Of a stretch of DNA of 25,071 nucleotides, positions 6,332 through 8,480 are shown in pieces (within the stretch, counting starts at the first letter, position 1; each line of letters starts with the position of its first letter). Location: NCBI GenBank assembly GCA_013416795.1, contig RQSC01001187.1:1-25071 (forward strand), written 5' to 3'. The position numbers and the translations under genes were made by a program. Under the pieces are notes generated by a model that saw nothing but the letters and a program-made list of their open reading frames with translations, had not been told where the DNA came from and ran no database searches. Origin of the DNA: Prasinococcaceae sp. CCMP 1430 (Eukaryota; Plantae; Prasinodermophyta).

Positions 6332-8480
6332 TCACCTTACGCGCCTGTACCTCCCGCTATCCGCGTCGCGCTCCACCTCGCCGACGAGCCCCTCGGGCTC
6401 GCGCTCCAGCAGCTTCGGCGCGCCCTCCACGCGGGCGCCCTCCAGCGCCGCCGAGGCCAGCGCCGCCAGCGTGGGGAAGCGCGCGCCGTACAGGGCGCCC
6501 GTCTGACCGCGCGGCGCACAGGCGTGTGTGTGTGTGTGTGTATGTGTGTGTGTGTGTGTGTGTGTGTGTGTGTGTGTGTGTGTGTGTGTGTGTGTGTGTG
6601 TGTGTGTGTGTGTGTGTGTATGTGTGTGTGTGTGTGTGTGTGTGTGTGTGTGTGTGTGTGTGTGTGTGTGTGTGTNGTGTGTGTGTGTGTGTGTGTGTGT
6701 GTGTGTGTGTGTGTGTGTGTGTGTGTGTGAGTGAGTGTGCGTGCGAGCGCGCGTGTGTGTGTGTGTGTTTGCGCACACGTCAGTCATAGGCGCGGCCCTG
6801 TTGACAACGCACACGCGCACACGTGAACGCACGTACACTCGCTCTCACTTCCTTTGACAATCGCACACACACGCACACACACGCATGCAGGCACGCCCGC
6901 CCACACGCACACACACACACGCGCGCAAGCAGGCGCCGCGCGCGCTCGCACCTCCACCAGCGCGGCGAGGTCGCGCCCGCCGGCGGCCTCCGCGCCGCCG
7001 CCGTACAGCGCTGCGGGCGAGCCCGCGGCGGCGGCGTCCTCCTCGCGCGCGCGGTCCACCCACACCACGCCCGCGTGGTCGGAGCGCAAAGAGAGCGGCT
7101 GAGCGCACGCGTGCGCATGCATTTGCGCGTGTGCACGTGCGTGCGTGCGTGTGTGTTTGTGTGTGTGTGTGTGTGTGTGTGTGTGTGTGTGTGTGTGTGT
7201 GTGTGTGTCGTGTTAGCGCGCACACACGCACATTCGCGCGTACGCACTCGCGACAACGTACACACACGCACACACACACGTGCAGAGGCGCTCACACACG
7301 TGCGCGCACGCGCGCTCGCACGCTCGTGTACACACGCGCGCGCAATCGCACCTCGAGGCTCTCCGCGACGCCGCGCGCGACGTGCGCCGCGCGCGTGGGG
7401 TCGACGCCCGCGCGCGCGAGCGCCCTCGCGCAGTGGTCGAAGTACGCCGCGTCGGGGGCGTACGCGCCGGCATCGCTGGCAGGCAGGCTGTGTCAGCTGT
7501 GTGTGTGTGTGTGTGTGTGTGTGTGTGTGTGTGTGTGTGTGTGTGTGTGTGAAACGGGCACACACACGCATCGACACACCTGGCGGGCAGGCTCAGCTCC
7601 GCGTCGAAGGCGAAGCCGACGCGCGCGCACGCGTGCGCGAGCGCCGAGGCGTCGGCGCCGGGCGCCGCGGCGAAGAAGCGCAGGTGGGGGTGCGCCGAGC
7701 GGAGCGCGTCCAGCGCGGGGCGGGCGTCCGCGTACGCCTGCGCGCGAGCGGGCGGGAGCGACGACGTGTGTGTGTGTGTGTGTGTGTGTGTGCGTGTGTG
7801 TGTGTGTGTGTGTGTGTGTGTGTGTGTGTGTGTGTGTGTGTGTGTGAGTGTCACGCATTGACGTAAGTGAGTGCACGCGAGAGAGAGCAGAGCGGGCGTC
7901 AGCTCACATAGACTACGCGGTCCTGCTTACACACGCACGTACACACACACACACACACACACACAAGTAAAAACAGAAACGTCCTGCACACGCCCGCGCC
8001 CGCGCGCGCGCCCACCTCGCTCCTGATGACCCTCCTCGCGAACGCCCTCGCCTCGCCCTCGCCGCCGTCGGCGTCCTCGTCGGCGAGGCCGAGGCCGGCG
8101 GCCGCGGCCGCGTAGGCGCCGGCGAGGAGCTCCTCGTGCGGCGCCACGCCGCCCGCCGACAGCCGTGCGCGGCGCGCGCACGACGTGAACGCCTGTGTGT
8201 GTGCGCGCGAGCGTGTGTGTGTGTGTTTGTTGGTGTGTGTGTGTGTGTGTGTGTGTGTGTGTGTGTGTGTGTGTGTGTGTGTGTGTGTGTGTGTGCGTAT
8301 GTGTTTGTTGTGTTGTGTGTGTGTATGCGCGCGCGCACGCGCGTGTGTGTGAGTGTGTGCACGCACGCAAAAATGTGTGTGTGTGTGCGTGCGCACACGC
8401 GTGCATCGCCAACGCGCGCTCGGTCGCTCGCGCACGCACCTGCAGCAGCAGGTCCTCGCGCAGCGGCACCCCCCCTCCCT
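6332..8480 (-). CDS. HAD-superfamily (haloacid dehalogenase-like) protein with degenerate catalytic motifs; exons about 8480-8440, 8192-8016, 7737-7580, 7475-7352, 7098-6952, 6502-6332; 5' end not found
   Basis: Five phase-compatible GT-AG junctions give ...AYADARPALDALRSAHPHLRFFAAAPG...SLPASDAGAYAPDAAYFDHCARAL...DPTRAAHVARGVAESLEP...HAGVVWVDR. This follows the order of HAD core motifs (fPDa..aL..L; s.dvgayKPd..yF; ..HVg....D; G..vWv.R). Confidence 0.6.
6520..8400. repeat. Intronic (GT)n/(CA)n microsatellites of the HAD-like gene; N at 6676 lies inside the longest tract
   Basis: Tracts at about 6525-6770, 6860-6920, 7140-7208, 7498-7551, 7766-7848, 7930-7965 and 8195-8400. Confidence 0.95.

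Follow-up and report, generated by a model that had tools for sequence, protein, structure and literature searches.

How does an intron come to end in a copy of the very exon end that precedes it? This question is raised by a minus-strand gene of Prasinococcaceae sp. CCMP 1430, located in a stretch of DNA of 25,071 nucleotides that we will call the window (contig RQSC01001187.1 of the assembly GCA_013416795.1). On the minus strand, the 3' end of exon 3 of this gene consists of the 19-nt stretch AGCTGAGCCTGCCCGCCAG (7598-7580), which is directly followed by an intron of 104 nt (7579-7476). The 3' end of this intron can be aligned to the 3' end of the exon with 18 identities out of 19 and one single gap of 4 nt, which corresponds to a CACA insert in the intron copy. 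A first-pass annotation of this DNA had already pointed to the repeat, and both our alignment and a search of the window agree with its coordinates and its description. Apart from Daphnia and the algae that bear introners, few organisms show clear scars of the birth of an intron. The reading that we favor here, with a confidence somewhat better than even and from the sequence itself, is that the 104-nt intron is a young spliceosomal intron, probably born by an insertion that duplicated 19 to 25 nt of its target.

The window has a GC content of about 67-70%, and its coding frames have a very high GC3. Both values agree with what has been published for Prasinoderma coloniale, that is to say a GC content of 69.8% and a GC3 of 85.7% (PMC7455551, PMC11884799). 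In the gene that carries the repeat, the five minus-strand exons at 8192-8016, 7737-7580, 7475-7352, 7098-6952 and 6502-6333 show one frame each, with a GC3 comprised between 0.96 and 1.00, and the value pooled over their 257 codons is 0.98. The gene as a whole (6333-8192) has six exons and the same GC3 of 0.98; its putative first exon, at 8441-8500, has no ATG, and the start of the gene was not found. This gene is an orphan with a strong coding signature. Indeed, the five exons searched separately gave no match in Pfam, a word search with exon 3 in its open reading frame returned no homologue, and a HMMER search of exon 3 against 1.84 billion protein representatives only returned a spurious repeat protein. 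A likeness of the protein to HAD-type hydrolases, noticed by eye, was dropped for want of Pfam support. The locus of exon 3 had no counterpart in the JGI metagenomes, in which an alignment of the neighboring LRR protein gave only two unrelated short contigs at 44% identity. The locus was likewise not found in the GTDB genomes, nor was an exact 32-mer found in IMG/VR.

The surroundings of this gene show several features of their own. The neighboring LRR gene (9468-10557, minus strand) has one intron and is conserved in Mesostigma (47%), the only relative with a name, and a relative at 67% was also found. An ORF from ENA that is 99% identical to it reads through its intron as His/Thr/Arg repeats, which points to a near-identical strain, wild or cultured, with the same CA-rich intron in public data. 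Between 8560 and 9400, upstream of the orphan gene, lies a block of lower GC content that contains a 79-bp unit repeated 3.2 times (8706-8958) and that carries telomere-like motifs of opposite orientation at its ends, of the AACCCTAA type at 8560-8680 and of the TTAGGGTT type at 9320-9385 in minus-strand reading. Such a structure could correspond to a mobile element, or else to a subtelomeric piece that was captured. The intergenic segment at 10860-11070, upstream of the LRR gene, holds two copies of an AT-rich repeat of 92-98 bp. On the plus strand, 1444-2643 and 4912-6070 form a near-identical segmental duplication with two ankyrin-repeat genes made of 99-bp (33-residue) units, and the TRF rows of the two copies are identical.

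Read from 5' to 3', the 104-nt intron is composed of GTGTGT, CGATGC, (GT)4, GCCCGTTTC, (CA)27, AGCTGA, CACA and GCCTGCCTGCCAG, after which exon 4 opens with CGATGC. If a stands for AGCTGA, b for GCCTGCCCGCCAG and c for CGATGC, the locus can be written as a b (GT)3 c (GT)4 core (CA)27 a (CA)2 b c, and its parts are located in Table 1. Both copies of the repeat terminate exactly at a splice junction. Their sole base mismatch is a T at 7481 in the intron against a C at 7585 in the exon, which is a third codon position in the exon copy; in a gene with a GC3 of 0.98, this fits a copy that has been freed from coding constraint. The CACA insert changes CTGAG into CTGAC in the intron copy. The proposal that the branch-like motif derives from the copied CTGAG is therefore borne out, since the insert creates a match to CTRAC, a consensus that occurs in 9 of the 11 introns that we delimited in this window. 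Finally, the first 6 nt of exon 4 (CGATGC) recur 6 nt within the intron, close to the donor, so that the duplicated target may be of 25 nt rather than 19.

Table 1. Location of the parts of the repeat-bearing locus, and of the second intron of interest, in the window
Feature	Position	Strand	Description
Exon 3 of the orphan gene	7580..7737	-	158 nt, phase 2 at its 3' end; frame 0 stop-free, with a GC of 0.83/0.62/1.00 at the three codon positions
Direct repeat, copy 1	7580..7598	-	The 19 nt that end exon 3, composed of a (AGCTGA) and b (GCCTGCCCGCCAG)
Intron	7476..7579	-	104 nt, GT-AG; shortest intron of the 11 delimited in this window
5' splice site GTGTGT	7574..7579	-	Fits GTG[C/T]G, the donor consensus of the window; in copy 1, has part b on one side and part c on the other
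CGATGC island (part c)	7568..7573	-	Same as the first 6 nt of exon 4; GT repeats on both sides
(GT)4 and unique core GCCCGTTTC	7551..7567	-	Core single-copy in the window
Perfect (CA)27 microsatellite	7498..7551	-	TRF: 27 copies, 100% matches; upstream of the branch site, unlike in other introns
Direct repeat, copy 2 (AGCTGA + CACA + GCCTGCCTGCCAG)	7476..7498	-	3' end of the intron; aligned to copy 1
Branch-like CTGAC	7496-7492	-	In copy 2; putative branch A at 7493
AGs in copy 2	internal 7489-7488; acceptor (favored) 7477-7476	-	
Exon 4	7352..7475	-	124 nt, opens with CGATGC (7475-7470); GC by codon position 0.83/0.61/0.98, frame 1
Intron 2 of the ABC transporter gene	17165..17400	+	Exon end found again at the 3' end (18/19) and, in degenerate form, up to the AG; anchored score 16.5

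The copy at the 3' end of the intron contains several AGs. The frames of exons 3 and 4, as they are set by GC3, need the removal of a length equal to 2 modulo 3, which 104 nt satisfies. In the codon reading, the removal of these 104 nt gives a junction that reads a-b-c, and the AG at 7488 would be in frame too. With the acceptor at 7476, the product reads ...ELSLPA-S-DAGAYAPD in frame. The AG at 7489-7488 adds SLPA to it, and the AG at 7498-7497 is in frame but yields AGC TGA, hence a stop. The reading frames thus agree with the first-pass annotation, which held that the final AG leaves a clean junction and that the one at 7488 would duplicate SLPA. The 12 nt between the inner AG and the acceptor at 7476 hold CCT, a codon that ends in T, when some 98% of the codons of this gene end in G or C, which argues that these 12 nt are not translated; an alternative donor located 12 nt further in would add two T-ending codons. 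The distance from the CTGAC motif to the acceptor is 17 nt, and only 4-5 nt separate the branch A from the inner AG, which is probably too close for use as a 3' splice site.

The anatomy of this intron can be compared with that of the 11 introns (itself included) that we defined in the window from the GC3 frames and the splice consensus. Their donors are GTGCG in five cases, GTGTG in four, and GTGGG and GTGAG in one case each. A CTRAC motif (CTGAC or CTAAC) is found in nine of them, and in the eight CTRAC introns other than the 104-nt one, the 24-277 nt that separate the motif from the acceptor are CA-rich and free of AG, which fits the rule of the first AG after the branch point. The 104-nt intron is the only one of the nine to have an AG between the motif and the acceptor, and the only one in which the CA repeat is found upstream of the CTRAC motif. 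Its (CA)27 is also the only dinucleotide array of the window to be 100% pure, as the other GT/CA arrays range from 82 to 95% (TRF). The usual pattern, which consists of GT repeats, then a branch site, then an AG-free CA tract down to the acceptor, is thus not the one that we observe here. The shortest length, the pure array, the misplaced CA tract and the inner AG all fit a young intron that would not yet have taken the usual form of the introns of this genome. In the last intron of the gene, a single N is found at about 6675 within a long (CA)n, and the length of this array in the assembly is uncertain.

A repeat of this kind has to be weighed against chance in such GC-rich DNA. In a genome of 70% GC, a C-rich acceptor context may resemble an exon end that codes for Leu-Pro-Ala, and CTGCCAG is indeed also found at the end of the intron of the LRR gene. 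The window holds many ungapped 14-nt matches, and the ungapped 14-nt core of the repeat is unremarkable when taken alone, as 8 of 100 shuffles contain this 14-mer, with at most 2 mismatches, just as often. What makes the match significant is its gapped extension, together with the exact register at both splice sites. The gapped 19-nt pattern is found at only 2 places in the window, with 0 expected from 100 shuffles. The alignment anchored at both 3' ends scores 12.0, and among 10,656 random G|GT x AG pairs drawn from the window a single one does as well (P of about 1e-4). This anchored rate, of about 1-3 in 10,000 per intron, nonetheless means that one or two matches as good as this one are expected by chance genome-wide. 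The first-pass annotation had proposed a comparison of exon ends and intron ends against controls, for which we used the 11 introns of the window. Two of the 11 cognate pairs stand out, namely the 104-nt intron (12.0) and intron 2 of the ABC transporter gene (16.5, the highest of all), whereas the nine others do not, with scores of 4-8 for a non-cognate mean of 5.6. When the alignment is local and unanchored, one of the 110 non-cognate pairs of these introns also scores 12, through a CG low-complexity match. Apart from the ABC intron, direct repeats flanking the 15 GT/CA arrays of the window amount to low-complexity matches, and in this test the score of 12.0 of the 104-nt intron is under the non-cognate 95th percentile (14). 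As for the CGATGC island, an exon-start 6-mer is expected within the first 25 nt of an intron with a probability of 0.017 under a generic null, and is seen in 3 of the 110 non-cognate pairs; the island was noticed post hoc, and its p of about 0.02 has to be read accordingly. Chance would also have to account for a stronger second case 10 kb away and for the independent oddities of the intron (the shortest, made of a pure repeat, with its CA tract misplaced), and we consider it quite unlikely.

What kind of event could then have produced this arrangement? In the reading that we favor, a short piece of GT/CA-repeat DNA would have entered a once-continuous coding sequence, ...AGCTGA GCCTGCCCGCCAG CGATGC..., and the repair of the break would have duplicated the target over 19 nt, or probably 25 nt. 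The left copy would have stayed in place as the exon end, and the adjoining GT repeat would act as the 5' splice site. Since GTGTG corresponds to the donor consensus found locally, a GT repeat that comes to lie beside an exon end is a ready-made 5' splice site, and this trait alone may be specific to the genome. The right copy would have become the 3' end of the intron and would provide a CAG acceptor right before the old downstream sequence, so that splicing would restore the original message exactly. The 4-nt CACA insert in this right copy would then have made the branch consensus CTGAC, at 17 nt from the acceptor. As for the repair itself, it might have been the fill-in of a staggered break or a templated synthesis of the polymerase-theta type. 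One argument in favor of such an insertion is that a-b-c, the junction of the two exons, is spelled out by the two copies together, and that only a template devoid of the intron could have supplied it. Moreover, an insertion with target duplication into a continuous coding sequence makes both copies end at a splice junction automatically. A duplication of 19-25 nt exceeds the 4-12 bp reported for staggered breaks, which counts against break repair. The microsatellite had been taken for the inserted material, but it may instead be a later expansion.

The repeat could also have been acquired by an intron that was already old, if a break in its unstable CA tract had been repaired by copying the nearby exon end, with the replacement of the former acceptor region. 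Error-prone end joining is known to copy nearby sequence by templating, no compartment in Prasinoderma coloniale is as mutable as the introns filled with microsatellites (PMC11884799), and most of the new Daphnia introns hold internal repeats that were attributed to secondary breaks (PMC4202315). Such a remodeling would however need two coincidences to reach the same register, since the copied segment must run up to the first base of exon 4 and no further, and the start of exon 4 must in addition have been copied beside the donor, which makes it unlikely in our view. An introner, meaning here a transposon that is non-autonomous, bears inverted GT/AC termini and finds its acceptor in the target-site duplication, would explain why a splice site comes from the flanking duplication, as it does in some introner families (PMC9860276), and why the intron opens with GT repeats while its body closes with AC repeats. 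This GTGTGT...ACACAC arrangement had been put forward as inverted termini that mark an insert, but the same polarity is found in all five introns of the gene, which are GT-rich at their start and CA-rich at their end. The idea of a hairpin was abandoned, as the intron folds no better than its dinucleotide shuffles (z = -0.27). The unique core GCCCGTTTC has no second copy in the 25-kb window, even with 2-3 mismatches allowed, and we see neither the 3-9 bp duplications of introners (PMC9860276), against 19-25 nt here, nor element-specific terminal inverted repeats. Moreover, the introner survey (PMC9860276) makes no mention of Prasinoderma in its main text, and an introner is, all in all, very improbable. 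We hold in equally low esteem the tandem duplication of an exon segment carrying AG|GT (Rogers model) with a subsequent growth of the microsatellite. This model does predict that the exon end is repeated at the intron end, but it draws both splice sites from the duplicated AG|GT, and here the inferred ancestral junction CAG|CGA has no GT and the donor GTGTGT is outside the duplicated sequence. In addition, a duplication of 25 nt would be too short for splicing, and the frame would have been shifted until the repeat grew.

An insertion with target duplication into a continuous coding sequence is thus the origin that we retain as the probable one for the 104-nt intron, and intron 2 of the ABC transporter gene offers a second case for comparison. 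Like the 104-nt intron, it has the exon end copied at its 3' end, a GT repeat right at the donor and the branch motif CTGAC. It differs from it by a body made of GT only, by a branch site in unique sequence upstream of the copy, and by the length of the copy, which is of 27-28 nt. In this ABC intron, the 8-nt segment that immediately precedes the AG (GTGCTCGC) is in addition a tandem repeat of the beginning of the following exon. The two introns together invite a bolder proposal, which we regard as doubtful at this stage, that this alga might make introns in an ongoing and transposon-independent way, through GT/CA-repeat inserts at exon breaks with unusually long target duplications, of 19-28 nt, the donor coming from the GT repeat and the AG from the exon copy. 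If this were true, the inserts would be spliceable at birth, which could explain the polarized GT and CA repeats that fill the introns of this genome, and the pair found in these 25 kb would be its first visible examples. If they are isolated, they make one more example of a known footprint. In either case, two introns of this kind in a deep-branching green alga for which RNA-seq and mutation-accumulation lines have been published are a test case for whether break repair with long target duplications creates introns there.

These features can finally be set beside the known systems of intron gain. The introners of Micromonas, Aureococcus and others are multi-copy families with duplications of 3-9 bp and often terminal inverted repeats (PMC9860276, PMC11282704). 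They share with the 104-nt intron one splice site that comes from the duplicated target, and some of their families add or keep codons. They differ from it in that neither a family nor specific termini are seen here, in a window of 25 kb, and in that the duplication is much longer here. On a broader scale, direct repeats of 4-30 bp have been described within 10 bp of both borders in all classes of introns, with a mean of 11.4 bp, and were read as insertion scars in what is a descriptive survey (Rogers and Bendich 2025, PMC11782384). In comparison, the repeat that we report is at the long end of this range, and it was tested against a local null. The closest parallel is with the new introns of Daphnia pulex that arose at staggered double-strand breaks and that are flanked by repeats of 4-12 bp (Li et al. 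2009; PMC4202315). Presence/absence polymorphism has been shown for these Daphnia introns. The repeat is longer here (19 nt, perhaps 25), and the body of the intron is almost wholly made of GT/CA microsatellite. Beyond these differences, the Daphnia introns are, like the 104-nt intron, short and made of an unrelated filler, and they carry the copy of the exon end at their far end; their splicing restores the old message, as that of the 104-nt intron would do. The distinct route of intron gain that had been claimed for this locus thus comes back to a published footprint, as the copying of the exon end to the far side of a newly gained intron is precisely what was described in Daphnia (PMC4202315), and the same flanking duplication of the exon end is found here, with 18 of 19 identities, an indel of 4 nt and both copies at the splice junctions.
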